NCBI RefSeq assembly: GCF_000400465.1
Contig: NW_008806283.1
Span: 180,001-212,000 of the forward strand
DNA from: Wallemia ichthyophaga EXF-994
Lineage: Eukaryota > Fungi > Basidiomycota
DNA length: 32,000 nt
Direction: 5' to 3'
The notes under the pieces are model-generated. The model saw only the letters and a list, made by a program, of their open reading frames with translations. It had not been told where the DNA came from and did no database searches. A program made the translations under genes and the position numbers. Shown one piece after another: positions 2,452 to 29,395 of this stretch; position 1 is the stretch's first letter, and the number at the start of each line of letters is the position of its first letter.

Positions 2452-5400
2452 TTACACCCGCCGCATGTTTGCGATGTGTGTACTCAGTTCGTTGAGAATG
2501 TTTCTGTAAGTGGCCAAATCAAGCCCAGTCATCAGGGCCGATTGAAGTGAGGCTTGAAGTGCAGCTTTGCTGCCTTCTGGACATCTTAGATTCTGAATGA
2601 TAGTCGATAGTATCAAGTCTCTGTTCAACCAAAGGTTCGTATCTTCGTAGTTGAGCATAGTTGAAATGAACTTAATTAGTCGTTGCTTCAGGGTTCGCGA
2701 AAAGGTCAATCTCATTAGTATAGCGTTGAGAGGTATTGCCAAAATCTGCGATAATACGTTTGCGCCATGTTTTCCTATGAACAGACGTCAGTATGACTTC
2801 TGTCGTAGTAATCCCAACTAACTATCAGCTGAGTGCTTGATGAAGCTTTCCATTCCATCAAGAAGAGTATATGAAGCGTTCCAATGCGAAGTGATTGCTT
2901 GGTTAAGAATATTGAGTAGAGTAGTGTTGAAGAAGTTTTCTTCAGACGAACTAATGCGTAAATTTATTGACCGCGGAAAGCTTCTCAATACCGTGCATGC
3001 AAGATCAATTGAGTCACTTTGCAAGGTAAGGTTCGACTGTATGATTGTTCGTGAAATTTTGAAGACAGGGTCTAAGTAAGAGAGAACAAATAAAGAGAAG
3101 TTTTTCTCATTATTAACATCACTGGCACTTCCATCCACAGCAGCCAGCTCTCTCAAAATCTTAGTTGTGGTCTCAACACCTTCACTAAACTCGTCGCTAT
3201 CGTCCATGCCCGTCTCGTATTTGATAGATAGATAGTTTTCAAACCACATATTCAATATAGGCGCTACGTAAGTTTGTGGTAATGCTCTCAACGTACTTTC
3301 ATCGTAATCCAAACCAAGGTCCATATTTTGTATTATTGAATAGAAAATAGACAGAACATCCATTTGTATATCGATGCGTGCTTTGTAGTGCTGCTGAACT
3401 ACTCCTATCAACTGCGACAAGACATCTTTAATGAAACTGACAGTCTCTATATATGTATAGGGATCTAACGTTTCACTTAATCCAACTAGAGCATTCAAGC
3501 CCATTTTAACATTAGTAATGTATGGATGCCTCTGTGAATTGGCTCCAAATTCTGGATTTTCAATTACGTTGAGCATAACGCTTATGAAATAGAAGATACG
3601 AGACTTGTACTGGCTGGTCTGTTCAGCTTTCCTATCCATCTTACTGATGTACGTTCCACAACTCTTAACTAGCTTTTTGTCCAGCTTGTACGGCCAATCG
3701 TGCATGTTCGATAAGACAATATCAATTATGCTGCCAAAATTGATTAATGCAGGTAATGTGGGAAGACTTTCAATCGTATCAGCTAATCCTTCTACCACTT
3801 CCTCTTCAGATTTCCATTTTAGTAAAGAATGTTCGATAACCTTTTGAAATTCAACGTAAAACCCTACATTATTCAACGCTTGTAGTGGCGGAAGCGACAA
3901 GCAATCTATCAGTCCATAGGTTCGCAGATATCTTGCCCAGAAACACTTCCAAATGATGCCAGACACGTTAGGTGAGAGACCCATATCACTTGAAAATAAG
4001 GTAGTCAATTTTGCCAAACTTCTCACAAGCATTGACAAAGCAGAAACTGTTTGTTCACTGGATATGATTTGAGTTGGAATCAATGGTGTTTCTCCGATGC
4101 CCTCGTCAGCTATTATCGATCCGGCAAATAAAACTAGCGTTTGTAATCTATCGTAGTTGCAGTCTGACAGAAAGCCTGACGTTTCGATAAGCATATTGTA
4201 CATGTTCAGCTTTTCAGTGACGTTATCCAAAATTGGCAGTGATTCCATTCTGCTCAGTTGAGCTAAAGGATCCAAGATGACTTTCATTTCTGTTTCAATG
4301 TCATCTAATTCTTCTTCGAAAACTTCCTGTGAATTATCCAAGGGTGATGCTTTATTTTCCAGCCATCCTTTGGCTATCAGGGTGCACATTTCTATTGGTA
4401 TGATGATCCTGTTACTTTCCAAACTGGCTAAGATGGATAGCCAGCACGCCAAAAAATCTGCAAACGCTTCAGCTCCTTGTGATAGAGAAGCACTTCCAAG
4501 TTGGAACAACTTCTGTACATATTCCTCGCCTTTCTGTTCGAGAATAACGTTTAGATTGCGAGATTGGAGCAGAGACTTATGGCATGAGAGCTTCGTACAA
4601 ATGTCCATACATTCGGCATTTTCAAGGTAATGCACAAGGCTGAGAGACCATCCATCTTTGTCTTGTGGGTGACTGCTGCTGAAGATGGCGTTCAAAACTT
4701 TCTTCATCATAAAACCAAGTGTTTCGTTGTCAAAAGTGTTTACAGACAGGATCAGATGAAGCACTTGAGGACTGGCTAGTTGAATAAGGACGCTGATGTG
4801 CATTGAGTCAGTCGCAGTGTTGTAAATGAAATCTTTTTGGTCGTTTCGATAAAGTAAAAGCGCCTCTAATGCTGGTATGGTATACTTGATGACATTGTGG
4901 TCGTGACTGTAGGTGAGGCTGTGTAATACGATGTTTGAGAGGACGGGAAGAACGTTGTCCTAAAAGCTGGATAAGCGTTGTAAGCCCAACAAAGACGAAG
5001 CATACCTCAAATGACTTAGTTTGAAGCTCATTGTCTTCATCAAGATTAATATTTTGCTCTTCCAGGATCGCGCGGGATATACCGACAGCTGCTGAAGGTG
5101 AAGATTGTCTGATGTTATTGAGAATGACGACCAAGTTTTCTAGGCTGGTAGCTTTAACGAGGGCTAAATGCGCCTTTACTGAAACGTATACTGGTACTGC
5201 TCTATCGCTGAGAATGTAACTGAGAAGACATTGACTGATCTCGGGACTTGAATTTGGGCTGATAGTGGTTATGAGCAGCGTAAGGAGATGAAAGTGTGCG
5301 TAATATTCCTGCGAGTTCTCTGGAGTTTCTATAAATCTCTGTATATCCACTCCCACGTAACTCACCAAGTACTGCAATCGTCAACAAAGGTATCTCATTT

Positions 5401-5510
5401 GGGGACAGTGCCTCATTCATAGCCAATAATTCATTCTCGCCTTGCTGCCTAGTCCCTGGATGTGTAAATTGCTGACACGCTTGCTCAATTCTTCCAATCG
5501 CAGCATCCAT
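2452..5510 (-). CDS. Importin-beta-family karyopherin, exportin-4-like HEAT-repeat protein (~972 aa)
   Basis: Exons 5510-5366, 5319-5006, 4959-2823, 2774-2452; GT-AG introns of 46, 46 and 48 nt give one frame. The spliced N-terminus (RIEQACQQF...RQQGENELL...VLENSQEYYAHFHLL...CLLSYIL) resembles the importin-beta N-terminal domain pattern of exportin-4. Subfamily call is from memory of the family. Confidence 0.6.
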
Positions 5511-9742: not shown

Positions 9743-10827
9743 CTAGGTAGCAAGGTTGACGTCGTTGAGTGCGATGGCTATTGCTGCCTTATGATGGCCG
9801 TTGTACTGCCTCACAGTGTCACCGCTAGCGAGTTCCCATAACCTCGCGGAGTGGTCTGAGGATGCAGAGACGAGATAGGCTGAGTCAGCGGAGAAAGCAG
9901 CATCCCATACCCATCTCTGATGGCCGGTGAGCACCTTTTCCAACCTGAAGTCGTAATTATGGGTCGACCAAATCTTAATCGTTGTATCGGCAGAACAAGT
10001 AGCAAGATGCCTAATGGCAATTGTCAGATTATGAGCAATTGAAAGGTATCAGCTCACTTGGTATCGGGGGAGAGTATACATTTTGTGATATACCTACTGT
10101 GAGCAGGCAGCTTCGTTATTGGAGTGAATTCTGAGGCTTCGTATTCCTGATCGGCGCGTATCTTCCAGACAAAGCAATTACCTTTGTTGTTTCCAGCGAC
10201 GAGCGAGCTGCCGTCAGAAGCAATAGTGACTGAGCGAATGGGCACGTCTTCTTCGGGTACAAGTTCATGGCTGCAGGTGTTCTCACCCAAATCCCAGACT
10301 TTAACGCTTCCAGCTTGGTCGCAGGAGATGATCTCTCCTTGGTTTGGGTGTATGACAACGTCGTTGACTGGCGATGGATGATCGAAAGCCCGCTGTACAT
10401 GAGATGTTCTGTGGATTGAGCAATGAGAAACTAAAGCTACTATTATGACTGATAAGCTCACCTCGTGTCCCAAATCTTGACTGTACCATCCTCACTACCA
10501 GTCGCAATCCACTTCCCCTCAGCCTGGAAAACGACTGCAGTAACGTTTGCAGTGTGTCCGTTAAATGATTGTATCTAAGCCAAGTAAGAAAAGCGCCGTA
10601 ATCAGATTAGAGCAGAGCCATACCGGGTTTGGGTCGCTGCTATTGATATCGTAAAGTTTTACAGAGGTATAGCCTGCGGAGGCTAGAAATTTTTTGTCTG
10701 GGCTGATAGCGAGCCTATTGACGGAATCTGAGTGGTGAATTGTCCGTGAGCATCCACCGCTCCAGGCCTCCCAGAAGCGTATCGTGCGATCGTAGCCCGC
10801 GGAGGTGAGAATAACGTCGGCGCTCAT
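9743..10827 (-). CDS. LST8: TOR complex subunit Lst8, WD40 (~311 aa)
   Basis: Exons 10827-10624, 10574-10462, 10408-10058, 10010-9743. VILTSAGYDRTIRFWEAWSG, GSEDGTVKIWD, GHQRWVWDAAFSADSAYLVSASSDHSARLW, GHHKAAIAIALND are diagnostic. Confidence 0.97.
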
Positions 10828-11280: not shown

Positions 11281-11302
11281 GGATGAACTAATTGCATGTT
11301 TT
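11281..11302 (+). promoter_or_regulatory. Conserved upstream element of ferritin-like copy A (GGATGAACTAATTGCATGTTTT)
   Basis: 20/22 identical to the reverse complement of 22769-22790 upstream of copy B, within otherwise diverged promoters. Confidence 0.5.
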
Positions 11303-11352
11303 AGCGGATTCCAGGTATAAATGACGCAAATCAATTGCCGCTTTTGCTTCTC

Positions 11353-12569
11353 TTACTATTACCACAATGATCTCCAAACTTCTCAGTTCAGCAATCATAG
11401 CCTCTTCTGCACTTGCATACCCAGCGCCCCCAGACGGTGGCGTGGGCGTTTCAGGTGACGAACTCCCTGAGTACACCCCAATGTCCGACTTTGACACCGC
11501 CAGCTTTGTCGTTGGTGTTAACCAGGAGTTCCTGGAGTTAGACCTCTTTCACAACATCCTCGCATCATTTCCAGACGAGGATTTCGAAGCTGTTGGCATT
11601 GACGCATCACAGAGATATTACATCCAAGAAATGGCTGAGCAAGAGGTTGGTCATGCAGAGATGATCAACAACATTCTCGCGTCGGTTGGACAGACCTCCC
11701 AACAGTGCTCATACAAGTACCCTTACACTACTGTGAGAGAGGCACTTGCGTTCGCAGAATACATCACTAGATTCGGTGAAGCAGGTGTCTATGGTTTCCT
11801 TCCTCATTTGGACTCTCGCCCAATCGCTCAACTTGTGAGTAGACATTGTCTTGCTAATGATTTTTCTGATGAAACATAGCTTCTCCAAAGTATCACCACT
11901 GAGGCCAAGCAAGAAGTCTCTATGGCAATGATGGCGGGTGAATTCCCACAACCATACTGGTTTAACATGGGTAGGAAAATTCTCATCCAAGGATTTTTAA
12001 GCTGATTAATTCAATACAGGTCTCACTCAAGCTATGGCTTGGAGCTTGTTGGTTCCTTACCTCGACAGCTGCCCAGAAAGCAACCCAAGAGTCGAGTTCC
12101 CAGTCTTCCCAGCTTTGAATGTCACCAACGCCAACGCGACGCTCGACACATCTATCGAATCCGCTGTCAGTAATAACTACACACACGTAGCTCAACCTGG
12201 CAGACAGCTCGAGCTGCAATGGGAGGCACCAGGTATGGCTGTTGGACCATCAGAGCAAAACTACACCACCGATAAGAACCCAGATCTTGGTGACCCATCG
12301 CACGTCGCCTTCATTCACCAACTTAATGTCACATATGCTCCACTCGAAAACATCGACACTGAGGCCATGACAGCTACCACTATCCACCCAGACTTTATGA
12401 TGTACGGCAAGGGTATGGGCGTTAATGGAACTGTCTTCATCGCAATCACCGACGAAGAAGTTCCAGTCACACCATACAACTTTAGCTTACTCAACGATCA
12501 CGTCCATGCATTTGGACCATACTTTGCAGGTATCTGAGCGATTTAAGCAATTGCTGCTAGAAATCTTGA
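11353..12569 (+). repeat. Left arm of 1217-bp inverted repeat (partner 21517-22733)
   Basis: Base-by-base comparison with the reverse complement (position p pairs with 34086-p): no indels; mismatches only at 11359, 11387, 11612, 11678, 11885, 12432, 12564. Confidence 0.98.
11367..12537 (+). CDS. rds1: Secreted Rds1-type ferritin-like (Ferritin_2) protein, copy A (358 aa)
   Basis: Exons 11367-11834, 11880-11970, 12020-12537. Signal peptide; YPAPPDGGVG, SDFD, NQEFLELDLFH, MAEQEVGHAEM (ExxH), TRFGEAGVYGFLPHLDSR, QSITTEAKQ match the fungal Rds1/ferritin-like family. Confidence 0.88.
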
Positions 12570-12795
12570 TTTTATAAATCTTAAAGACACAAACTATGCT
12601 TGTATGAATTGATGAATTATTGATGGTCTCTGCGTATCTTTTTATTGGAATTAGTGAAACTTTTCTCATCTTTAACACTCATCGGGAACACCAGAGAGAG
12701 CTATTTCAGCAACTGAATAAACAACAAAGAAAGGTAATTTATAATAAAAGGTTTACAACGGCAGAATGCACGTAACTTTTTATCTAATTTGTACA

Positions 12796-14294
12796 TTATT
12801 GCTTTGGTAAATCGTTCAAGGATGTCAAAGGAGAAGGAGGATCGTGGATGTTGATCATTGGAGGCATTTGTTGAGGGAAATGAGCTTGGGCTTGGGCTTG
12901 AGCTTGAGCCTGCAATGATTGAACTAATTGAACAGAAGCAGTGGCTGAGATATTCGACATCCAAATTCGAGTTTTAAAACCTCTAAAAAGTTCTCTAACT
13001 AATTCTCTAAAGTCTATCCTTTGTTCGGAAATGAAATAAAAGGTTAATTTGCGTCTATCCCATTGGTATTCAGCGTCAATAACTTCCATTGGCAAGTTCC
13101 TTTGTTTAACTTTTGAGATACAGATTTGCAGGGCCTTTGATTCATCTTGGCGCTTAGTAATCAACAACTGAGTATCAGAAGTGGAAGCCTTGGCAAATAT
13201 TTTCTTTGGTTGGAGGTCTTTAGAGACGGTCTTGAGAGCTTCAAAAGCAGGGTTGTGATTGTTGTGGGTAGCAGAAGCAGCGGGTAATTGATGAACGGAG
13301 GATGTTGGTGAGGGAGCATCATCCAAAGGAGAAACAGATATAGAAGGTCTTGAAGTGGGCATAGAAAAGTCTGAGTGGATGGGATGAACAGACTGCCCAG
13401 ATTGAGAAAATTGGAATTGGTTCAAGTCTTCGATAGTGAGGGAGTCATTTGTAACTTTACCAAGATCCTTGCCCCTGTCAGCTTCAACAATGACGAGGTC
13501 ACCAAAGTGTATATTCGAAGAGAGGGAAGTGTCTAGAGAGTAAAATAAGTCGGACCTTTAAAGTGGGGTTAGTGACGACATAGAAAAAAGGAAAGAACGA
13601 ACCTCGCAGCCTTGAATTCAACGATGAAGAGGGTAGTAAGGGGAGGAATGCTAGACGTGGGAGTGCCTTTGCCGAGATCATTGAGACTTGACTGCGGTTG
13701 CTGGGTCTGAGACTGAGACTGGGATTGAACGTCAAAAGGGAAAAATCTTGGCTGTGTGGGAGAAGAGAGAGGAAGAGGAGGCAAGTTGAAAAAGTGCGCA
13801 GGAGGATGGTTTTGAATTGGGGAGAGTTTGGGGAGGATTTGGTTGAAAGGATTTCTTTGGTTGAGCTCGAGACCAAGCGCGCTGTTGTCTAAAGGTTGTA
13901 GACTTGGGGGGAATTGAGAAGAGAGGGGGGAAGACTGAGAAGCAAAGTCAAATCTGGAGCCCCGCCTTTCGTTGTTCAAGTTGAAGTTGTCGGAGGATGA
14001 TTTGTGGGTGATCGTTGGGGATGACGAGTGGGGGTCTGGAGCTGCAACTTGACCTGGACCTGGACCTGGACCTGGAGCCACGTAAGAAGATCTATGCTTG
14101 TTTATTGGCTCGTCATTCAAATTCAAATTAAAAAAGTCGAGCTCAGTCGTGTTGGCCAGCGTGGGTCTTCTGTACGAATCTTGAGAAGGCTGCGTCGGGC
14201 TATCGATCATAGAATGCCTCCTCAAAGAAATATCATCGATTAATAAATTTTTATTATTAAATGGAGATTTGTTTGAAATATCATTCTCAGCCAT
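12796..14294 (-). CDS. PSP1: PSP1 C-terminal-domain protein (~483 aa)
   Basis: Exons 14294-13603 and 13555-12796. FIVEFKAARSDLFY, GDLVIVEADRGKDLG, MEVIDAEYQWDRRKLTFYF...RIDFRELVRELF...TRIWM; low-complexity N-terminus. Confidence 0.9.
12884..12907. repeat. (GCTTGR)4 coding hexamer repeat, Gln-Ala tract of PSP1
   Basis: Seen directly; translates to QAQAQAQA on the minus strand. Confidence 0.85.
14051..14074. repeat. (GACCTG)4 coding hexamer repeat, Pro-Gly tract of PSP1
   Basis: Seen directly; PGPGPGPG on the minus strand. Confidence 0.9.
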
Positions 14295-14325
14295 ACTCGT
14301 TTGTTACCAACGATAGCTGCTGTCA

Positions 14326-17264
14326 ATGTCAGCGTAAGTATATTAATAAATAAAATTTAATTTTTATAATTAATTATTACAGCTACTCGAGACACGCCCC
14401 TACAAAGGCTTTTGGTTTAATATTTAATTCCCCTTCCAACGTACACTATCAAACATCTACAAAGCTAGCATATCTCCCTGCACTTGAAGATGTACTCGTT
14501 TGGGATATTAAATCTGCTACTCTTCAATCTGAGTGGCATGAGACTGGCTGTACAGCTCAAGTTACCCAATTATCCCCAAATCCTGCCAATAACTCCTTCG
14601 CTGTCGGTTATAGTGATGGCTCTATTAGAATTTGGCAGAATAACGCTGCAAACATCACTTTCAACGGCCACAAATCTCCTATCACCTCTCTTGAATGGGA
14701 CTTTGAGGGTATACGCCTTATTTCTGGCTCAAAAGACACAAATATCATCGTTTGGGATACTTTGGCTGAACAAGGTCTTACTCGTTTAAAAGGTCACAAA
14801 GATGCTATAAACACACTCCATTTCATCTCTCAAAATCATTTAATCTCCACTTCAAACGATACTTTCATCAAGCTATGGGATCTTAACACTCAACATTGCT
14901 TACAAACTCTAATTGGTCACAGATCCCCTGTCACCACCTCTACCTTAACAAGTGACCTCTCTTTACTCGCTTCTGGCTCTTCCGATGGTGAAATTAGACT
15001 TTGGTCTATTAACCACGAAAATCTTCATGAGGGCTTGTCTCAAGATGATAATGGCGATTTCATCAAATTCATCAACCATATCTCCACCCTTCCAACTCAC
15101 ACTATTAATAGAAAACGCATCTCTCAACTCGCTTTTCACGATTCCTTACCCTTCTTAGCCATTTTATCTTCTGATAGATCTCTCGAAGTTCTCAGATTGC
15201 GTACTGAAGAAGAAATCAAGTCAAAGATGGCTAGACGTAGACGTCGCAATAAAGATAAAGGAAAAGCTACTCATGATGATTCTTCTGTCATTAACGTCAC
15301 CATGAACGATAGGCTAACTCCATACTTGGTCGTCCATTCTCACTCCAAGATCAAGTCTTTCTCTTTTCCCCCACTTCCTTCTAATTTTGATCCTAAAGCT
15401 CCTGCACAGGTCCTTTTAGCATTAGCCAATAATGCTGTTGAATTGCATGCCATACCAGCACCAACCAAGAAGACCGCTGATGAAAGGGAGCCTGAAGCTT
15501 ACCGCCTTCACTCTTTAGATCTTCCCGGCCATAGAGCTGATATACGCGCACTTGCTCTCTCCTCTGATGATCAGTTGTTAGCCAGTGCATCCAATGGCCA
15601 ACTCAAGGTGTGGAATATGAAAACTCAAGCCTGTCTGAGAACCATAGACTGTGGCTATGCCATCTCTGTTGCTTTCCTCCCAGGCAACAGGTCTATTGTC
15701 ATTGGTACAAAGAGTGGTAACCTTCAACTTTATGATTTAATTTCGTCAACTCAAATTGCAGATGTTGATGCCCACGACAATACTATCTACGCCATTGACA
15801 TCGCACCATCAAAAACTTCACTCGTCACTGCCTCTGGCGATAAAGATGTCAAATTCTGGGATATCACTGAAGTTGAACGTGACTCTGATGTTGTCGAAAA
15901 TCAAAAAGTCAAGTCTGTTGGCATTGTGCACACCCGCACACTCAAAATGACCGATGAAGTGTTGGCTGTTAAGCATTCACCTGATAACCGCTACATAGCA
16001 GTATCACTCTTAGACTCAACTGTCAAGATCTTCTTCAATGATTCACTGAAATTTTATCTATCACTCTACGGACATAAATTGCCCGTATTATCCATGGATA
16101 TCTCACACGACTCGAAACTCATCATCACCTCATCGGCTGACAAGAATATTAAAATTTGGGGTTTGGACTTTGGTGACTGTAGGAAATCTCTTTTTGGTCA
16201 TGATAGCAGTGTGATGCAGGTTCAATTCGAAGCCGATTCTCATAGATTTTGGTCCACATCCAAGGACGCAACCGTTGCTTATTGGGATGGTGACAAATTT
16301 GAACAAATTCAGAAATTGTATGGACATCAAGGTGAAATCTGGGCATTGGTTACATCCAAAGACGGTCAATTCTTGGTAACAGGCTCACACGATAAGAGTT
16401 TGAGAGTCTGGGAAAAGCTCGACGAGCCTTTATTCTTAGAAGAAGAGCGTGAAAAGGCTTTGGAAGAGTTATATGAAGCGGATCTTGCTGATGAGGATGT
16501 TGGCAAGGACCAGAATGATCAGGTTGAAGCTGACAACGTACACAAAGCAACAAGCGAGACGTTGATGGCTGGTGAAAAGATTATTGAAGCCATCGAAATA
16601 TCTGACGAGGATATTAATGCATTGAATGACTACAATAATCTTTCTCAAGTAGATAAGGATAAGGTTGGTGGACCACCCACCCGCCATGCACAGTTTGTCG
16701 CACTGGGTAATCCAACTCCTGACGAATACTTGCTCAAGTTTGTACTTGAGAAGATTTCTCCACCTGATCTTCACGATGCTCTACTCGTTTTGCCTTTTAG
16801 CCATGTCATTTCACTGTTGCGTTATCTCGAAACATGGTCCGAAAAGGTGTGTTATGTTTGAGAAGTATCAAGAGTAAGCTGACAAGAAAACATAGGGATG
16901 GAATATCGGATTAGTCGCGCGTATACTTTTCTTCCTACTCAAGACCCATCACCACCAAATTGTAGCAAACAGAGTGATGAGAAACACAATGATAGGGCTA
17001 AAAAAGTCACTTAGGAAACGCTTGAATGAGCAGAAAGTGAGTTGCTGTCTACGATTAAGGAAATACTTTACTTACACATAACAGTCTGTTGTTGGATTCA
17101 ATCTTGCAGCTCTCAAAGTGATCAGACGTGCACACGACGCTGATCGCATTTCCAAATACTTAGAGGAGGAGGATATGGATGAAGAAAGAGCGAACCAACG
17201 TCTCAAAGCTGAGGAAGAAGCCTTGATGAATGCAGGTAAAAAGAGAAAGAGGATAATATTATAG
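14326..17264 (+). CDS. DIP2: SSU processome WD40 protein Dip2/Utp12 (WDR3) (~930 aa)
   Basis: Exons 14326-14333, 14383-16846, 16896-17036, 17085-17264. Spliced start MSAYSRHAPTKAFGLI; LPGHRADIRALALSSDD; LSLYGHKLPVLSMDIS; DLHDALLVLPFS; C-terminal Utp12 domain GFNLAALK. Confidence 0.95.
14361..14368 (-). promoter_or_regulatory. Candidate TATA box (TATAAAAA) for PSP1, inside DIP2 intron 1
   Basis: Minus-strand TATAAAAA ~67 nt upstream of the PSP1 ATG, within a 49-nt intron containing only 4 G/C. Confidence 0.4.
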
Positions 17265-17326
17265 ACTAATTGTACAAAACGTAGACTTCTAATTTATATT
17301 ATCATTGCAATTTTAGATCTAACGTA

Positions 17327-17757
17327 TCAGACTAGTCGCTGTGGTTGCGATTCCTCAATCTGTGCTGAATCAGATGACGTCTTGCGCTTTGATTTGAGTT
17401 GTTGGAGCTGAGACTTAAGGCTCTCTGGATCCTTTGCAGGTTTCTTAAAATATTTGTGAGTGATTTTGCTTGTAAACAGCAGTCAGCCTACATTTGTATC
17501 TTCTTCCTTAGGCCAGAATGTCGTTTTTGCCTGCATTTAAAGATCAGAGTGAGTAACTAGGTGTGTGTGTGTATAATCAATCTCACAGGCTCAATGTGCT
17601 TGTCATACCACTCAGGATCTCCAAAATGGTACATGAATGCTATTGGGAAGCTGCCAATACCATCAGCTTAAGCTGGGCGTATAGTGTCACGTCGATAAAT
17701 TAACACTCACAAGAGATAAGCAGCGAATTTGAATATTTCCAAGTTGGGTCCACCCAT
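17327..17757 (-). CDS. PET100: Cytochrome c oxidase assembly factor Pet100 (88 aa); missed by the ORF track
   Basis: Exons 17757-17711, 17650-17587, 17530-17492, 17443-17327 give MGGPNLEIFKFAAYLFFPIAFMYHFGDPEWYDKHIEPAKTTFWP...QRLV*. Confidence 0.92.
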
Positions 17758-17806
17758 CCTACAGCGTATTCTTCCTAATCGACGGCCAAGTCCAAGGGGC
17801 TAGATA

Positions 17807-19500
17807 ATGACAGACATTGATACAGACTTTAATAGTATTTCACTGCTATCCAATCATAACAAGGAAAATGCCATGACTTCAATTGCTATACCCAAATCAT
17901 CCACTTCTCTAAAAGATAACGATATCGATGATAGCAACCATAATGAGAGGAATGAGAGTTCGCCAAGAGGCAGGCATACAAAAATGCGTTCCTTGAGCAA
18001 TCCCGCATCTGATTTGGATACGGATACTGGCTTGTTGTTACGCAGAGTTGATGAGACTGCCTCTACATCAAGGAGGCATTCATTACATAAAGGGAAACAT
18101 AATATTATACACGCTATCGAAGAAAACGATAAGGGCTCTTCTGATATCGACTGGCAGTTCTGGGGCGAAGTGATGGCTAGTAAGTCTGAGACATTTCGGT
18201 GAGATATGCCTGACAGGTGTGCGTTATAGACTACGAGGACGTAGCTCATAACCAACCGCATGCGCTCTCCAAGGCTATTCAGAAGGGTATACCCAAGGAA
18301 TTACGCGGAATGTTGTGGCAGCTCATGTGAGTAACGTCATTGATGTGATTATCGTTGTTGACTATTATGCTCTAAAGGAGTAGCTCCAAGAACCCAGATC
18401 TAGAAGCATTATACCAAGAATACCTAAAGTTGTCATCAGTAAATGACAAAGCGATACATAAAGATCTTTCACGCACATTCCCGGCGTTGGAGTACTTCCA
18501 GGACCCAGATTCAGTAAATTGGCTTTTCAACGTGGCCAAAGCTTACTCACTTTATGATGTGGAGTGTGGATATACCCAGGGAATCCTATTCGTTATAGGT
18601 CCTCTTCTGTTAAATGCGCCAGATGAAGAGGCCTTTGGACTGCTAATCAGATTAATGCAATCTTATGATCTGCGTGGTCACTATCTACCTGAAATGCCTG
18701 GTTTACATTTGAGACTTTTCCAGTTTGATAGACTATTGGAAGAGTTTTTACCCATGGTGTACACGCACCTCACTAAACAAGGTGTCAAATCTTCGATGTA
18801 TGCTTCTCAATGGTTTATGACACTTTTTTCGTATCGCTTTCCACTCGACATTGTCTACAGGATATTCGACAACATATTCGCTGAAGGTATAGAGGCTATT
18901 TTTAGGTTTGGCATAGGATTGATGAAAAAGAATGAAGACAAATTACTGTCTCTGCAATTTGAAAATATAGTCGACTTTCTCAAAGAGGGAATGTTGGAAG
19001 CATACAGAATACCACGAGATACCACAACTAGGGCAGGATCAGTGTCACTGCAGGCACCTCTACTCAGAGGGACATCACACAGCTCACCACACTCGAGTAT
19101 AAGCGGAAGCGTCTCCCCCAGACTAGCTACTTCAGCGGATAGCGGTGAATGGGACTGTGATTCATTAGTCTCAGATGCTTATGATGTCAAGATAACACCA
19201 TTCCAACTAGATTCTTATGCTTCTGAATGGGCTGAGACTTGTTACAATGTCAACAAACACGCGCATGAAGTCGATGAATTGAGACTGGCAAATAGAGGTC
19301 TGTCTTCGCAGATAAAAAAACTGGAGGCTAGTCTTACGCAGATCAACGGAGAGCATTGCGAGCTGGTTAAAACTCTCGTCAATATAAGAATCGAGAAAGA
19401 TGAGATGGAGGAATCTCTAATCAACAAGCTAGTCAGGGCACAGATGGAGAAGGCAGCAGCAGAGGAGGAGCTTCAACGCATGAGAGAGCACATCAGGTGA
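17807..19500 (+). CDS. GYP5: TBC-domain Rab GTPase-activating protein, Gyp5-like
   Basis: Exons 17807-18179, 18230-18326, 18378-19500. IDWQFWGEV, GIPKELRGMLWQ, IHKDLSRTFP, GYTQG, YASQWFMTLFSYRFP, then a coiled coil. A further intron 19497-19548 is possible, moving the stop to 19558. Confidence 0.9.
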
Positions 19501-19761
19501 TAAACAAGAAAATCAAAATAGCAGTTTCTAATTTGTTTCAATTTCAAGGTCTCACTGATATGGTAAGTGGTAAAATGAAAATTTAAAAAATTGTATGAAA
19601 GTGGAAATGGAGAGAACGATTGTAATAACGCAGTTTAAATTAAAAGCCTTACGATTTTTGCTTAAATTAAAAATATAAAATCTCACGGCGTTCACTCGCT
19701 AAGACGAATCCATCGATCTTTCCTAAACTTAATTTATCGTTCAAAAAATAAGATTGTTTAG

Positions 19762-21203
19762 ATGACGGCAGCTGGCACATCTAGCGGCGAGACACCAGCC
19801 GCATTAGCTGAATTAGTAACTCAAGTGTCTCCAAATTCCCAACCGCAGAGGAATACGCGTCAACCTGTTCGCAAGACTAAGAAAAAGAAACAGCCTGCTC
19901 CCAGTGAAACTGAGAAGAACATCGGCAGTCACGAGAATACCAATAAACAGCCCCAACAATCGTTATCGACTTCAGAAAATGACGCTCAATCACCCCATAC
20001 TGAACAGCCTCCACAAAGACCCGAGCAGATTCCTACAACAGCGACAAACAATGGTTAGTGTTTATCTTACATAATTATAGACTCAAATTTACCAAATACT
20101 CACTAGTAAAAGAAGAAACTCAGCCAACGAAAGAACCTTCCAAACCAGTACCCAAACAGCGCAAAAAGAAGTCAAAATTATCTTCATTCTTCTCTTCCAT
20201 CGTTCCATGCGTTGGAGAATCATCAAGAAATCCAGCGCACGACATTTCATCGAGTGAGGCACCACACAAAACACAAAATCAACCGTCAGCATCAACATCA
20301 CGGCGGAAGTCTAATAATAACATAAATAACTCAAGTACAGTAGACCTTAGTCAGAATAATGAAGATGATATACCACCTGCTACGCCAGTCATACCTTCTC
20401 AAGGAGTTGATATGCCTCTATCAGATACAGCTGGATTGACCTCAGGAGCTGTTATGCCCCCCGGAAAAGAATTAAATCCACCAACACCATCTCGTCAACC
20501 ATCCACTCACCAACACCACGAAAGCGAATCTTCTGAGGAAGAGGAAGAAGAGGAAGTTGATGAATTTGAGAGTGAGCTGGCAGATGAGGAGCGCATAATC
20601 GCAAAAGGTGGAATGGGTATACCAGTTGGTGAGGATGGTCAACCTAACCCTCTTTTACCTCCTTTAATCACATCAGACAATGGCAAAAAGTGCTTAGTTT
20701 TGGATTTGGATGAGACTTTAGTGCACAGTTCATTTAAATTAATTCAGCATGCTGATTACGTGGTACCTGTTGAAATTGAGTCGCAAACTCACAACGTATA
20801 CGTGATAAAGCGCCCAGGAGTTGATGCTTTCCTTAAGAGAATGGGTGATTTGTTTGAAATTGTCGTATTCACAGCTTCACTATCTAAATACGCCGACCCA
20901 GTATTAGATATGTTGGATATCAACAGAGTAGTCAGGCACCGATTATTCAGAGAAAGTTGTTACAATCATAAAGGAAATTATGTCAAGGATCTCTCACAAT
21001 TAGGTAGACTGATCAACGATAGTATAATCATCGATAATAGCCCTGCATCTTACGTATTTCATCCAAACAATGCAGTACCAGTTTCAAGTTGGTTCAATGA
21101 TCCTCATGATACTGAATTGACCGATTTGTGTCCTTTCTTGACAGATTTGACAGCGGTTGATGATGTTAGAGGCATATTAAATGGTACTTTATTAGCTTCA
21201 TAG
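19762..21203 (+). CDS. PSR1: Psr1-like FCP1/SCP (NIF) HAD phosphatase (~462 aa)
   Basis: Exons 19762-20053 and 20107-21203. [17 protein letters not shown] (DxDxT), [39 protein letters not shown]. Confidence 0.93.
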
Positions 21204-21516
21204 TCTTTCAGTTCCCTACCTTGACACAGTTCATATTCAATATTTTTCAATTTACATTCAATTAGATTTGCATTCATAATACTTGGTCAATCAACACATT
21301 CCACAGCTCTCAAAATGTTATAACTTTAGTTAAACACAATCGAATCATTTGAAACACCGAAACCAGTCATTGCTACTCCTTTCACTTCTACAATTTGTAA
21401 TTCTTTAATTCCAATTACATTAAAACTTCATCCAAATTCTAAAGCGATTTCAAATGCGTAATCATTCATGAAAGTACAAGCATAGTCATTGCTCCCCAAA
21501 GACGTGTCATTTTCAT

Positions 21517-22733
21517 TCAAGTTTTCTAGCAGCAATTGCTTAAATCGCTCAGATACCTGCAAAGTATGGTCCAAATGCATGGACGTGATCGTTGAGTAAG
21601 CTAAAGTTGTATGGTGTGACTGGAACTTCTTCGTCGGTGATTGCGATGAAGACGGTTCCATTAACGCCCATACCCTTGCCGTACATCATAAAGTCTGGGT
21701 GGATAGTGGTAGCTGTCATGGCCTCAGTGTCGATGTTTTCGAGTGGAGCATATGTGACATTAAGTTGGTGAATGAAGGCGACGTGCGATGGGTCACCAAG
21801 ATCTGGGTTCTTATCGGTGGTGTAGTTTTGCTCTGATGGTCCAACAGCCATACCTGGTGCCTCCCATTGCAGCTCGAGCTGTCTGCCAGGTTGAGCTACG
21901 TGTGTGTAGTTATTACTGACAGCGGATTCGATAGATGTGTCGAGCGTCGCGTTGGCGTTGGTGACATTCAAAGCTGGGAAGACTGGGAACTCGACTCTTG
22001 GGTTGCTTTCTGGGCAGCTGTCGAGGTAAGGAACCAACAAGCTCCAAGCCATAGCTTGAGTGAGACCTGTATTGAATTAATCAGCTTAAAAATCCTTGGA
22101 TGAGAATTTTCCTACCCATGTTAAACCAGTATGGTTGTGGGAATTCACCCGCCATCATTGCCATAGAGACTTCTTGCTTGGCCTCAGTGGTGATACTTTG
22201 AAGAAGCTATGTTTCATCAGAAAAATCATTAGCAAGACAATGTCTACTCACAAGTTGAGCGATTGGGCGAGAGTCCAAATGAGGAAGGAAACCATAGACA
22301 CCTGCTTCACCGAATCTAGTGATGTATTCTGCGAACGCAAGTGCCTCTCTCACAGTAGTGTAAGGGTACTTGTATGAGCACTGTTGGGAGGTCTGTCCAA
22401 CCGACGCAAGAATGTTGTTGATCATCTCTGCATGACCAACCTCTTGCTCAGCCATTTCTTGGATGTAATATCTTTGTGATGCGTCAATGCCAACAGCTTC
22501 GAAATCCTCGTCTGGAAATGATGCGAGGATGTTGTGAAAGAGGTCTAACTCCAGGAACTCCTGGTTAACACCAACGACAAAGCTGGCGGTGTCAAAGTCG
22601 GACATTGGGGTGTACTCAGGGAGTTCGTCACCTGAAACGCCCACGCCACCGTCTGGGGGCGCTGGGTATGCAAGTGCAGAAGAGGCTATGATTGCTGAGC
22701 TGAGAAGTTTGGAGATCATTGTGGTAGTAGTAA
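21517..22733 (-). repeat. Right arm of 1217-bp inverted repeat (partner 11353-12569)
   Basis: Reverse complement of 11353-12569 with 7 substitutions and no indels. Confidence 0.98.
21549..22719 (-). CDS. rds1: Secreted Rds1-type ferritin-like protein, copy B (358 aa, identical to copy A)
   Basis: Exons 22719-22252, 22206-22116, 22066-21549. Five synonymous differences from copy A. The ATG at 22719 is preferred over the ORF-track start 22746 because homology begins just upstream of it. Confidence 0.88.
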
Positions 22734-22768
22734 AAGAAAAATGCATTACTTCTTAAAGGGGTCTCGGC

Positions 22769-22790
22769 AAAACATGCAATAAGTTCACCC
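22769..22790 (-). promoter_or_regulatory. Conserved upstream element of ferritin-like copy B (GGGTGAACTTATTGCATGTTTT)
   Basis: Counterpart of 11281-11302. Confidence 0.5.
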
Positions 22791-23325
22791 ACTCAGACAT
22801 CAGTCCGGGTAAAAGTTGGTAAAAGCTTTCCGGATGAAAGGATGTCTGTGATTGCTGTATCGAGTAGCGACGTTATTTAATAATGATCCCCTGATCAGTT
22901 ACGTCACATATATCACGTTTCGAATTCAATTGTTAATGTCACCCTTCGAATTCGATTGTGATAGCCAAGAAATCCTGTTCTATTCCGAGACACATCTCTG
23001 TCACAGTCGGATGTGTATCGTATATTAGCACGAGTAGCAATCGAGTAAAAGTAGCTTTTAGCTCTTCAGAAGGCCGTAGAAGGGCAGTAGCCTAGACTCT
23101 GTTGCCATCCAATCCTTTCCAAGATTATTCATCAGCCACGCTCAATCATTAACGAATAGGAAGACAATTAATTAAAAAAAATCTTACTATTCGTGGATCT
23201 AGTTAGTGTCTAGTTTTATTCTGATTATCTAGATGTAAGCTGTTGTTCTGTTCAACGTAGTAAGCTTGTTTTTGTTATAAATCAAAACATTCCAATGTAA
23301 ATTTCAATCAATTATTAAACCAAGC

Positions 23326-24707
23326 TCATTGTTCACGCGCTAATGGATTTACAAGCATTTCACCGAATTTTATTAAACTGGATGTACCACGTGGTTCGTT
23401 CAGAAGGAGTGGAATCTTTGGAAAGTCAATTAGTGCTGATTGCGTAAAAATACGCTTACTTTAACAATGTGGAAGTCTTCTCCATATCTAATACACTCAT
23501 CAGCATTTGACGTTACACTCATCAAACACTCACAAGTCATCAGCTTCTGCAAGATATTTCTTTTGGGTGCCATCTCTTGCTAGACATCTATCGCAATTTG
23601 ATCGAGAGTTACCTTGATCGTCTTGTGGTAGCAAGAGGAGGTTGTTTATAACTATGTTGCTGGTATCTATGCCACTGATTGAGTGTTAGTAGCTTCAAGC
23701 ATAGTTGAAAGCACTCACTAAGTCGAAAGTTCTTGTATCAGACGCTCAGTTTCGTATATAGACAAGAACTCAGCAATACAGACACAAACAACTGGAGATG
23801 GTGCGATTAGAGTTAGTGAGGCATTAATTACCAATACTACTCACAAGTTGTCAAGTCAGCGTTCTCAGAAATAATCAGCTGTGAACGCGATCATAGCTCA
23901 ACTGACTCACCTTGAATTGGGTGTTGACTTCATCGATGGTAGTGCGCATACTCTCTAATTTAGCAAAAATATCCTCTTGGGCATTAGCTCCCCCTCCCAT
24001 CATACCGGTGAAGTTGTTGATCAGACCACCAAATCGACCAGACAAAGAGCTAATTTTCTCCAAAGCCTTGGACAGAACGGTTGGGAAAGATAAGAAACGT
24101 AAAGTGTGACCAGTAGGAGCAGTATCAAAAACGATACAGCTATATTGTTGAGAATTGACGTATTTCATAATCTCAGCGAATCCCATAGCCTCATCAACAC
24201 CTGGGATAGCGAATGCCAAATCTTGGACAAAGCTGTTCAAGCCATTTGAATCACTGTCTTCATTGCTCTGGACCATTTCAGTTAAGGCTGCAGAAGGATC
24301 GATTTCCATTGCGGATAAGTTGTCGAAACCGTTGACATTAGTTGCCTCTTTTGAGAATTTCTGATTAAAAGCATCTGAAAGGTTGTGTGCGGGGTCTGTT
24401 GACTGTAAATGCGTAAAGGTGCTTAGAAACTTGTTACGTTTGAGTGAAATATATAACTCACTATCAGCAAAACGCTTTCACGGGACTTTGCGAGCTGAAT
24501 AGCTAAAGAGCAAGACGTTGTAGTCTTACCGACACCACCTTTACCACCTAATTCAAAGATATAGACATTCACCGTCCTGATGCAAGTACTAACCACAGAA
24601 GATCCATTTGAGCGTCTAAGCTTGTTTAGTAAAGCGTCTTTAGAAAACTCAAATCTCACTTTGTTATTGACTACATTCTCAAGCGTTGGTGCAAACTCGT
24701 CTGCCAT
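23326..24707 (-). CDS. GET3: Get3/ArsA ATPase for tail-anchored protein targeting (~332 aa, 9 exons)
   Basis: Exons 24707-24660, 24615-24594, 24547-24462, 24402-23911, 23863-23845, 23791-23719, 23674-23534, 23487-23460, 23415-23326. [67 protein letters not shown]. Confidence 0.96.
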
Positions 24708-26335: not shown

Positions 26336-28186
26336 TTGTGTTCAAAGTATAAAACATATCTTGAAATTATAGATAGAAATGAATCAAAGGATCTTTGAGT
26401 ACCTGTGTTTTGATTACTGTAGATGCTTTCACCCATGTAGAAGACCTTGTAAGTATCAATAAAGCCAGAAGCCAAAGCACATTTTTGTGTCAGCCGCCCA
26501 AATCGACGTATCTAAGTACGCGATGAACCAAACAACTATATCATTAAGCAACAAGATTTTGTCTCAATGGATCAAGACCAAATGTAGAAATATATGATAA
26601 GTGATGTGCTAACACTTATAATATCTGACAAAATACTTGACAACCTACGAAGCATCCAACTGACAAAATACTAAGACTTGCTTGAGTCATCTCTCACTTA
26701 TTCAATTGAAGTCCAACTAATCATTAATCTGGTTTCCCTCAAGGCGTTTATCAATGATGTCAACAGAGTCGTGTTATCAGAGTGAAAGTGTGATGAATTG
26801 TGTTATACGAGAGTTAAATAATAATAACAATTTAAGTGACAACACCTAAATACATTCAACGTCATCATGTTTCATGACTCCTAATTTTTCTCATTTTACA
26901 GCATTATAGTTGATCCTCGCAGAGCAGCAACAGCTCGAAAACAGTCAAACACTAGCAAACTTCAACAGCCAGTACTATTATAAAGCTAAATAGATCAATG
27001 AAATTACTCTTTTATATCTGATTATACCCTGATTCTTACCACATCACCAAAATAAAGCTCGTCATCTCCAAATCAAGAACGACACGCTCAGTAACGTCTT
27101 CTTCATATTGCTGTAATTACTACAAATATTAATATCATTCTATAGCTGTTGATTTGGCGACTAATTCAAAAGCATCTTTATCGGTATTAGCGCCGTGCAA
27201 TGCTCTGCTCGTCCAGTTATGTGGTATGTCGCAAGGAGAGTTTTGATATTTCGAAATGCAACTTCATACTATCCTGCCTTCTGTGATTTCAACGCAGACT
27301 TGATTGCCTTTTACAAGTCTATTATTCGAAATATCAAAATGCACTTGGTCTATCCAAAACCCCCCGATTCAAAGTTGGATTGAACTCCACTTGTCTTTGC
27401 ATGAATCGATTGTTCAAAGTCGAAGATGATCCAGAATGGTAAAACATTTCCCCTGTAGACACTGTTTGTCGGAAAACGTTAATCGCGTCTAGAAGTGTGA
27501 GCATTTGTAATTTTGGGTTCTTGCGCTCTTCATCAGCAAAAATTGATTGTATCGATCACTTAATCGCGTCAAATCCTCCACTTTTATCCCATAGCGCGCT
27601 AAAGAGTGTTGTCGGATTGTAATTTCCGAGCATCTTATAGGACGCAATTGGAGGCTCAGGGACATAATTGTGGTAAAAAATTTTAGAGCTTATTCAGGGC
27701 TACCTATGAAATTCTTTTATTTGAGATCATTCAAACTCGTAAAATGAGATGGGTGGTGGTAGTCGAGAATCCAACTCAGTGGATATCGAGAGGAGAGTTA
27801 ATCTGGAAACATATTTAGATTGCTGGAGATGCCATGAGATCTATTGTCCTGCTAAACTGTTCAAATTGTTAGTATTATCTCAGCATTCGTCTTCTGACAT
27901 ACTTGGTCAATTGCGGGGTGAACTAAGTTTGTTTCGTTCATTGGAGTGAGGGGCTATTCAATCCTATTAAACATGTTATCATACTCAGTCTAGCCCTTAA
28001 AAACATGCAGACAACAAAGGTAAAATAATTGTGCAAAGTGTTTGAAATGTTAATATAAGATTTTGAATACATTGGAGAAGTTGATACAGAAAGAACATAA
28101 GCGTGAAACGGAAAGCAAGAGTTAAGAATACAAGGGAGCGTATAAACCGAAATGAGATAAGCTCCAAATAAATACCTTTAGTCAGC

Positions 28187-29395
28187 TCATTTTGCTGACT
28201 TGTTTTGCTGTTGAGCTAACACACTCAAGAATTTGGCTTGACATTCCGTACTGCTAACGCCACAGGTAGCTTTAGCGGTGAGCTGAGAACACAAGTCGTC
28301 GAGATCGAAAGTCTGCTCGGGGATGTCCTTTCCAAGATCCTTCCACGTCCTTCTCACAACGGCATCGACGGGTTCATTGTTTTCGTTGGCAATCATCTCT
28401 ACCATCCTCTTAATCTCTTGGATAAGGTATGGGCTTATCTTGGACACATCCTCGTGGTGGGATTGAACGATACCCATTTGCTCCATCTTGGACTTGACCT
28501 GTGGACATTTGAGTCTCTCCTCTGGATCAGAAAGAGCTTGAGCAAGTTCAAGGATGGTAGGTGGAGGGCCGATAATGGATTCAGATGGGGGCTTTTTGTT
28601 AGCAGACAAAGATGCGGAGGCGGAGGGAGACGGTATAGAAGGGTTCGATTGGTTTTGGTCGAACATGAAGTCATTCTGGAGACCGAAGTCGTTGAGGAAG
28701 TCATCAAGTACGCCTGCGCCAGTGTTATTAAGATTAGAAGAATTATCCCTGTATTCAGCAGCGCTATTCAGGTTTGGAAGAGGGGAAGGAGATTTGTGGA
28801 AAGACCTAGAGTTTGAGTTGGATTGAGGTGGAGGGAATTGGAAAGTGAATGCCGAGTGTTTAAGAGTCATGTTCTCCTGTTGAAGTCTACTGAGGAGGTC
28901 TTTGAGGTTGGTGTTCTCTTCAGCCTGTGCAGCGACCTTGTCCTCAAGGACCTTAACGTGCTTCTCTTTTCTCTCTCTAAAAGCACGCTGAGCAGCTCTA
29001 TTCTGTTCCTTACGCTTACTGGTGCTGTTAGGTTTTGAATTGCGAGTAAGTTCACTGGAAGAGTCAGAAGAGCGTCTGTTGTTTGTGCTCTTGGAGGTGT
29101 GCTGTTCATTATCAAGTAGCTCATCACTCGCCTTACGCTTATCGCTGTCTTTATCTTTATCCTGAGTTTGGCTGTGTGAAGATTCAGGACTAGAAGTGTC
29201 GTTGTTTGTTAAGGGAGGAGTTGGATTCTCGTTGTATTCGGATTTAAAGTCAGGGAATTGGCTTGTGGCTACCAAATTGGGTAAGTCTGTCAAATGATTT
29301 GGATTAATTCCAGAATCAAATAATTTGTTGTGGCCATTGTTATTCCCATAATTCCCAACTTGCTGCTTAAGCATTTCTAAGAAATCTAAATCCAT
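28187..29395 (-). CDS. YAP1: Yap1/Pap1-like AP-1 bZIP transcription factor (402 aa)
   Basis: Basic region KRKEQNRAAQRAFRERKEKH plus zipper; C-terminal cysteine-rich domain FDLDDLCSQLTAKATC. Confidence 0.9.
   Translation of the reverse strand: MDLDFLEMLKQQVGNYGNNNGHNKLFDSGINPNHLTDLPNLVATSQFPDFKSEYNENPTPPLTNNDTSSPESSHSQTQDKDKDSDKRKASDELLDNEQHTSKSTNNRRSSDSSSELTRNSKPNSTSKRKEQNRAAQRAFRERKEKHVKVLEDKVAAQAEENTNLKDLLSRLQQENMTLKHSAFTFQFPPPQSNSNSRSFHKSPSPLPNLNSAAEYRDNSSNLNNTGAGVLDDFLNDFGLQNDFMFDQNQSNPSIPSPSASASLSANKKPPSESIIGPPPTILELAQALSDPEERLKCPQVKSKMEQMGIVQSHHEDVSKISPYLIQEIKRMVEMIANENNEPVDAVVRRTWKDLGKDIPEQTFDLDDLCSQLTAKATCGVSSTECQAKFLSVLAQQQNKSAK

Follow-up and report, generated by a model that had tools for sequence, protein, structure and literature searches.

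The inverted repeat and its two Rds1 genes

The stretch of DNA analyzed here (the window, 32 kb) is taken from the genome of Wallemia ichthyophaga EXF-994 (assembly GCA_000400465.1, scaffold KE007233.1, positions 180001 to 212000; sequence match, 100%), and it contains two copies of the gene Rds1 that point toward each other across a block of five other genes. A repeat search of the whole 32-kb window recovered the two copies as a 1222-nt inverted pair, the arms of which are 99% complementary (Table 1). An earlier sequence-only reading of this DNA had described two inward-pointing, nearly identical arms around five genes, and the interval that it gave for the interior, 12570 to 21516, is exactly the 8947-nt spacer found between the arms. 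The names that it proposed for the interior genes (PSP1, DIP2, PET100, GYP5, and PSR1) likewise agree with their domain content in Pfam. Other than the Rds1 inverted pair, no repeats of at least 40 nt were found across the window, which excludes a chance origin for the similarity of the arms. The window contains no N bases.

Each arm comprises one complete, inward-pointing gene of three exons, and the copies in the left and right arms (Rds1-L and Rds1-R, respectively) encode an identical protein of 358 amino acids (aa). The introns are 45 and 49 nt long, with the donors GTGAGT and GTAGG. The protein matches the Pfam family Ferritin_2 (PF13668) with an E value of 1.7e-16 and a score of 61 bits (cutoff, 24.7), and 754 homologues, many of which are named Rds1, are 42 to 56% identical to it across more than 90% of its length. 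Judged by domain match and homology, the arm genes are members of the fungal Rds1/Ferritin_2 stress-response family. Rds1 (EOR00712) has also been listed among the genes with higher expression at high salinity (Zajc et al. 2013, PMC3849046).

The two arms differ at eight positions (in left-arm coordinates, 11352, 11359, 11387, 11612, 11678, 11885, 12432, and 12564). Three of the eight lie no more than 40 nt from the outer edge, one sits 6 nt from the inner edge, and the 1176-nt core of the arm holds the other four. Five differences between Rds1-L and Rds1-R fall within the coding sequence (CDS), where all of them are synonymous, and the introns have none. The similarity starts 19 nt upstream of the Rds1 ATG and stops 32 nt downstream of the stop codon. 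The GC content at third codon positions (GC3) is 0.52 in Rds1 versus 0.31 to 0.42 in the neighboring genes, and the GC content of the arms is 47.6%, compared with 35 to 37% in the remainder of the insertion that carries the right copy (see below). The raised GC content of Rds1 fits with GC-biased conversion or, alternatively, with codon bias linked to expression.

Gene order in related species

Of the species compared, W. hederae is the nearest, with a DIP2 sequence that is 88% identical, versus 78% for W. mellicola. Its genes are arranged in the order PSP1(-), DIP2(+), PET100(-), RabGAP(+), PSR1(+), GET3(-), and SRP68(+), and the block is recovered against this species as a single collinear blastn match with 74% identity. 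The spacing between PSR1 and GET3 in W. hederae is 267 nt, with no Rds1 there. W. mellicola has the order and orientation of the window, which continue onward through the bZIP, ALAD, and DSPc genes; its PSR1-GET3 spacing is 185 nt, also without Rds1, and a methyltransferase gene is found on the PSP1 side. The EXF-994 block is in the ancestral orientation, and the insertion between PSR1 and GET3 is lineage specific.

The sequence-only reading had suggested that the block may exist in two orientations, and it named as evidence to the contrary a single orientation in all long reads and strains together with a gene order collinear with outgroups. W. hederae and W. mellicola are both collinear with the window, which supplies half of that evidence. 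The same reading had raised an origin of the arms in a staggered-break inversion of the five-gene block, of which the inverted duplication would be the scar. Staggered-break inversions do leave inverted duplications at both breakpoints, in keeping with the arrangement of the arms. However, in both outgroups PSR1 faces GET3 just as in the window, and PSP1 faces a remnant of Rds1 in W. hederae. The block is thus not inverted relative to the outgroups, which excludes this origin, and we give it next to no credence.

The remnant lies at the start of W. hederae contig SPNW01000006.1 (L013:1-550), which begins inside exon 1 at a point such that aa 76 to 157 are retained, with 80% identity. It ends at the exon-1 splice donor, exons 2 and 3 being deleted, and it stands in the same orientation as the left arm, directly before PSP1. 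Because the remnant abuts PSP1 there, the left Rds1-PSP1 junction already existed before W. hederae and W. ichthyophaga split. The gain of the right Rds1 copy came later and is confined to W. ichthyophaga, since the PSR1-GET3 spacers of the outgroups are without Rds1. No Rds1 protein of W. hederae or W. mellicola is present among the 120 best homologues, and these two species may have lost the gene.

The PSR1-GET3 intergenic region of W. hederae aligns to window positions 21129 to 21421 only, and the sequence from there to GET3 constitutes an insertion of about 1.9 kb. It consists of the right arm plus about 95 nt downstream and about 590 nt upstream, the latter being Rds1-R's own promoter. 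The other ~680 nt of the insertion cannot be aligned to the flanks of Rds1-L, apart from a 22-nt motif and a weak 30-nt match between the regions downstream of the two copies. The 22-nt motif (consensus, GGrTGAACTwATTGCATGTTTT) is found at a comparable distance from both Rds1 ATGs and is the only significant similarity between the upstream regions (local score of 34 versus 21.2 +/- 2.3 for shuffled sequences; z of ~5.6). Its core, ATTGCATG, is absent from the loci of a second Wallemia-like species that is described below. The motif may have a regulatory function, or it may be left over from the promoter that was duplicated. A TATAAAT sequence is also present about 45 nt upstream of the Rds1-L ATG.

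Rds1 paralogs in a second Wallemia-like species

Scaffolds from an ENA metagenome represent a second Wallemia-like species, which shares with the window the arrangement cellulase(+)-WD40(-)-Rds1(+) and has an Rds1 that is 73% identical. This species has two intronless Rds1 paralogs, arranged on one scaffold as direct repeats with about 25 kb between them (L001:10001-11105 and L009:10001-11105). Of the first 110 positions of their CDS, 49 differ, and three more differences occur by position 189; beyond this, a tract of 909 nt is 100% identical between the paralogs and extends to 7 nt past the stop codon. As only conversion explains such a pattern, the 3' nine-tenths of an old duplicate would have been converted, and Rds1 paralogs in the Wallemia-like group are evidently prone to conversion. 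The flanks of Rds1-R gave no signal of homology beyond the gene to the locus of paralog B in the second species.

Synteny between the two species breaks at the 3' end of Rds1. In the second species, a gene of a 972-aa type (L001:11262-14223, + strand) begins about 150 nt past the stop codon of Rds1-A. The gene of this type in the window is found at 2452 to 5510 (- strand), 5.9 kb to the left and beyond a 685-aa gene, the cellulase gene, and the WD40 gene; at the breakpoint, it is PSP1 that adjoins Rds1 in its place.

Variation of the arms among strains

In population assemblies of other W. ichthyophaga strains, Rds1 is found alone on separate contigs of 1162 to 1210 bp. The interior forms a contig of 9185 bp that is equivalent to window positions 12451 to 21635, and its two 119-nt ends are mutually inverted copies; this contig has 24 mismatches (0.26%) relative to EXF-994. 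The population assemblies were built from paired-end 150 (PE150) short reads (PMC6738226), and lone arm contigs together with a 9185-bp interior contig are the expected picture when a short-read assembler collapses an inverted repeat. We rejected the possibility that the repeat is itself an assembly artifact, as both inner junctions and, of the outer junctions, the right one recur in contigs of independent strains. The locus is a place where short-read assemblies of W. ichthyophaga always break, and orientation, copy-specific expression (reads map to both Rds1 copies), and single-nucleotide polymorphism calls at the locus are untrustworthy without long reads.

The strain data comprise contigs standing for about 20 samples or assemblies, some of which may be the same strains, and arms are linked directly to their flanks only in contigs L015, L016, L019, and L020. 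In sample SRR25393945 (L019 and L020), the GET3-linked arm has right-type bases at 11352 and 11359 and left-type bases at 11387, 11612, 11678, and 11885, and the PSR1-linked arm piece has left-type bases at 12432 and 12564; the overlap between these two contigs, of only 13 nt, does not allow them to be joined. The PSR1-linked arm of SRR25393958 (L016) has no differences over 1172 positions from the EXF-994 left arm, versus 5 of 1172 from the right arm. Six NCBI strains have the left-type base at 12564 in the right inner end (L015). Among the collapsed arm contigs, L017/L022, L021, and L018 have left-type bases continuously through 11678, 11885, and 12432, and L021 carries a different cluster of variants at 11570 to 11647, with a right-type base at 11612. 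None of the contigs examined that cover 11678, 11885, 12432, or 12564 has the base of the EXF-994 right arm at these positions. On the evidence of these contigs, the sites that distinguish the arms are not fixed within the species.

The collapsed Rds1 contigs of the strains also display all four combinations of two amino acid variants, I11L (window position 11397) and V94A (11647). These combinations fit with recombination or conversion, or they could represent a chimeric consensus of the two arms.

Probable gene conversion between the Rds1 copies

From the pattern of identity and divergence, we strongly infer gene conversion between the arms. As in other cases of concerted evolution, near-identity extends to silent and intron sites and ends abruptly against diverged flanks. 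Given homogenized silent sites and introns, abrupt edges, and divergence of the promoter and terminator, the right copy would be an older duplicate with a core that has been overwritten repeatedly. We therefore consider it quite probable that the arms are paralogous Rds1 stress genes kept nearly identical by interlocus gene conversion, with the block between them un-inverted.

According to this model, the left copy would be in its ancestral place beside the WD40/LST8 gene, next to PSP1 since at least the last ancestor shared with W. hederae. At a later time, and in the W. ichthyophaga lineage alone, about 1.9 kb of DNA with the right copy would have been inserted, in inverted orientation, into the short spacer between PSR1 and GET3, together with the promoter and terminator of that copy. 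The flanks of the insertion would since have diverged beyond alignment, and the CDS and introns would have been overwritten again and again by the partner copy, giving the 1222-nt arms their abrupt boundaries. The block of five genes would simply be whatever lay between the two Rds1 sites. Recombination between paired arms would now and then take the form of a crossover, and the block would then be inverted; a flip of this kind would be passive, proceeding via the general homologous-recombination machinery and with no regulated switch, and it would be functionally silent, each promoter traveling with its gene.

Alternatively, the arms may be a young inverted duplication, alike through recent copying and without any gene conversion. 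The divergence between the arms (0.65%, or 0.34% in the core) is indeed similar to the between-strain divergence of the block (0.27%). However, the repeat has the same edges in every strain assembly examined, and of the ~1.9 kb inserted, only 1222 nt is similar, the similarity breaking off abruptly at the limits of the gene. Furthermore, the residual promoter motif suggests diverged homology beyond the arms, arm-specific alleles vary between strains in such a way as to turn one arm into the other, and recent duplication cannot account for the Rds1 paralogs of the second species. We thus regard a young duplication as unlikely.

Several points weigh against gene conversion between the Rds1 copies as the source of their similarity. 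A very recent duplication of exactly gene size, accompanied by unrelated filler DNA, would give the same near-identity and the same unrelated flanks, and the 22-nt promoter match is short. The right copy may derive from the left copy by duplication, or it may be an older paralog that was relocated. The strain contigs are short-read or k-mer assemblies of low coverage in which the two arms are partly collapsed. W. ichthyophaga recombines, with a half-decay of linkage disequilibrium at ~1.3 kb (PMC6738226), and mosaics are also expected from allelic recombination in a recombining species. Without conversion, the EXF-994 right arm would have acquired four to six private substitutions, which is unlikely, although possible (about 1.2 would be expected, as estimated from the 0.27% strain divergence). 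Finally, polarization of the arm differences by the outgroups is mixed and, at such divergence, uninformative.

Interlocus gene conversion is responsible for the concerted evolution of the arms of human Y palindromes and of the gamma-globin genes. The Rds1 copies share with this class near-identity that is confined to a sharp-edged tract, diverged flanks, homogenized silent and intron sites, and polymorphism among individuals, and we see no difference in principle. In terms of these sequence features, the locus appears to be a new example of concerted evolution, in a halophilic basidiomycete; no earlier description of Rds1 concerted evolution at this W. ichthyophaga locus turned up in the literature searched.

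Orientation of the five-gene block

The sequence-only reading reasoned that, with the arms pointing inward and the promoters of both arm genes outside, both arm proteins would remain intact after a flip and only their 3' regions and neighbors would be swapped, and the gene models bear this out. Both ends of the block are 3' ends (the PSP1 stop is at 12796 and the PSR1 stop at 21203), and the five promoters of the block are internal to it. No gene would be disrupted by a flip, and only sequence beyond position +32 of each Rds1 stop would be exchanged. The arms very probably recombine with each other, the evidence being the pattern that points to gene conversion. Since the arms evidently interact (1.2 kb with >99% identity), a flip driven by crossover is mechanistically plausible; that inversion of the block occurs is something that we only infer.

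The sole orientation seen is the ancestral one, in EXF-994, which is the only assembly that resolves the arms. The EXF-994 reference was built with a 2-kb library, which is able to span an arm (PMC3849046), and the reference thus gives the majority orientation of that culture. The four junctions between arms and flanks are identical in both orientations, and contigs that contain a single edge consequently carry no information on orientation. Look-ups by exact protein recovered collapsed arms of ~1.2 kb, the 9.2-kb interior, and three low-coverage single-edge contigs from the strains. Among the strain contigs, look-ups with the Rds1 proteins and with the exon-1 and exon-3 open reading frames (ORFs) found no contig spanning a whole arm with both flanks.

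The block might be a natural, passive flip/flop region, with both orientations present among strains or within cultures as a result of recurrent crossovers between the arms. The arms are 99.3 to 100% identical over 1.2 kb and bear signs of ongoing exchange, and a flip would disrupt nothing. In addition, the species shows population-level recombination and a polymorphic inversion at its mating-type (MAT) locus (PMC6738226), and there is a precedent in chromosome XIV of Saccharomyces cerevisiae (PMC9731477). Against this, the ancestral orientation is the only one seen so far, and the reference represents the majority state of the culture; the contigs of other strains are uninformative, their junctions being alike in both orientations; and the arms are three to four times shorter than the yeast chromosome XIV repeat. 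On balance, we consider a flip/flop region possible but doubtful. It is with similar reserve that we suggest that the 8.9-kb PSP1-PSR1 block constitutes a recurrent, neutral flip/flop polymorphism sustained by homogenization of the arms, and that Rds1 paralogs may reshuffle gene order in Wallemia; the latter notion derives from the position of the Rds1 3' end at a synteny breakpoint between species.

The closest analogue of the locus is this region of S. cerevisiae chromosome XIV, a 24-kb flip/flop region bordered by a 4-kb inverted repeat in which paralogous sporulation genes are kept homogenized (Salzberg et al. 2022, PMC9731477). The region is stable over the time spans of laboratory work but has been re-inverted many times in evolution (PMC9731477). 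In both systems, homogenized paralogous genes form an inverted repeat around ordinary genes with no dedicated recombinase, and the genes enclosed are not obviously affected by a flip. They differ in that both orientations of the yeast region are documented within and between species and its repeat is conserved across the genus, whereas one orientation is known in Wallemia and the locus there, with a 1.2-kb repeat, one gene per arm, and an 8.9-kb block of five genes, is confined to W. ichthyophaga. If both orientations do exist, the locus would be a basidiomycete counterpart of the chromosome XIV region and a second, independent case of a homogenized inverted repeat with a flip/flop block, an architecture so far described in Saccharomyces. 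The long inverted repeats of Candida albicans (Todd et al. 2019, PMC6591007) are similar as well in being dispersed long repeats, often copies of genes, that act as passive substrates for inversion. In C. albicans, however, inversions have been observed between isolates, whereas inversion in Wallemia is only a possibility.

A programmed and regulated inversion switch was also considered, after the manner of the mating-type flip/flop of Ogataea polymorpha and Komagataella or of the recombinase invertons (Hin/Gin, Fim, and the 2-micron FLP system). The resemblance to such switches is one of geometry only, in that inverted repeats surround a multigene segment, which in Ogataea and Komagataella is inverted by homologous recombination (PMC5720833). 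In those yeasts, the flip/flop is induced by starvation and subjects one of the two MAT loci to silencing by a centromere or telomere (PMC5720833); mating-type flip/flop is also treated by Maekawa and Kaneko (2014), as cited in PMC6738226. The Wallemia locus, in contrast, has no MAT genes and no evident position-dependent silencing, and no consequence for expression is expected; its arms are whole genes rather than the short sites of the recombinase invertons. The statement in the sequence-only reading that no recombinase or mating-type gene is visible agrees with the Pfam annotation of the window genes, which shows no recombinase domain and no MAT, HMG, homeodomain, or alpha-box gene. The genes with promoters would be the same in either orientation, no centromeric or telomeric setting is evident, and neither W. 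hederae nor W. mellicola has the repeat, which is thus not a conserved device. Furthermore, the putative MAT locus of W. ichthyophaga (SXI1, HMG, STE3, BAP31, and CAF1) is a different locus, which is inverted in 4 of 21 strains (PMC6738226). A programmed switch is therefore extremely improbable. The host is an obligately halophilic basidiomycete rather than a budding yeast, and the methylotrophic-yeast context in which the sequence-only reading had set the block does not apply; the locus has no bearing on mating-type switching.

Neighboring genes and other features of the window

The coordinates of the arms, the block, and the adjacent genes are collected in Table 1.

Table 1. Features of the Rds1 inverted repeat, the enclosed block, and its surroundings (window coordinates)
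Feature	Position	Strand	Remarks
WD40 gene (LST8 in the sequence-only reading)	9743..10827	-	Divergent from Rds1-L
22-nt promoter motif GGATGAACTAATTGCATGTTTT	11281..11302	+	65-86 nt upstream of Rds1-L ATG
Left arm of inverted repeat	11348..12569	+	1222 nt; arm alignment
Rds1-L gene (EOR00712), 358 aa	CDS 11367..12537; exons 11367-11834, 11880-11970, 12020-12537	+	Spliced model equals annotated protein P0127
Interior block, five genes	12570..21516		8947 nt; promoters internal, 3' end at each block end
PSP1-domain gene	12796..14210	-	Pfam PF04468; coordinates from EXF-994 annotation
DIP2/WDR3, U3 snoRNP WD40 protein	14261..17264	+	Domain content
PET100	17327..17634	-	PF09803
RabGAP-TBC gene, GYP5-like	17807..19500	+	PF00566 and PF23436
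NIF-type phosphatase, PSR1-like	19762..21203	+	PF03031
W. ichthyophaga-specific insertion between PSR1 and GET3	21422..23325	-	~1.9 kb; outgroup spacing and alignment
Right arm of inverted repeat	21517..22738	-	1222 nt; 8 differences from left arm
Rds1-R gene (EOR00718), 358 aa	CDS 21549..22719; exons 22252-22719, 22116-22206, 21549-22066	-	Spliced model
Matching 22-nt motif GGGTGAACTTATTGCATGTTTT	22769..22790	-	50-71 nt upstream of Rds1-R ATG
GET3/ArsA ATPase	23326..24707	-	3' end faces Rds1-R promoter

The EXF-994 model of GET3 (324 aa, ending at 23530) seems to terminate within an intron. Two short 3' exons that are conserved in W. hederae and W. mellicola lie beyond it (23326 to 23529), and the last of these ends with the stop codon, which was placed by homology at 23326 to 23328.

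No tRNA gene or known RNA family was found in the window as a landmark for insertion or recombination. Positions 1 to 2450 are AT rich (GC, 33 to 36%) and have no ORF of at least 100 aa, in a genome that is reported to be ~74% coding. A second such stretch, of 1.85 kb with a GC content of 36.5% and no ORF of at least 100 aa, extends from 26336 to 28186, between SRP68 and the start of a bZIP transcription factor gene (28187 to 29395, - strand); a promoter or 5' leader of unusual length may account for it. Within PSP1, positions 13001 to 14000 have a GC skew of +0.37, which matches a low-complexity coding stretch rich in Q, A, S, and P on the minus strand.

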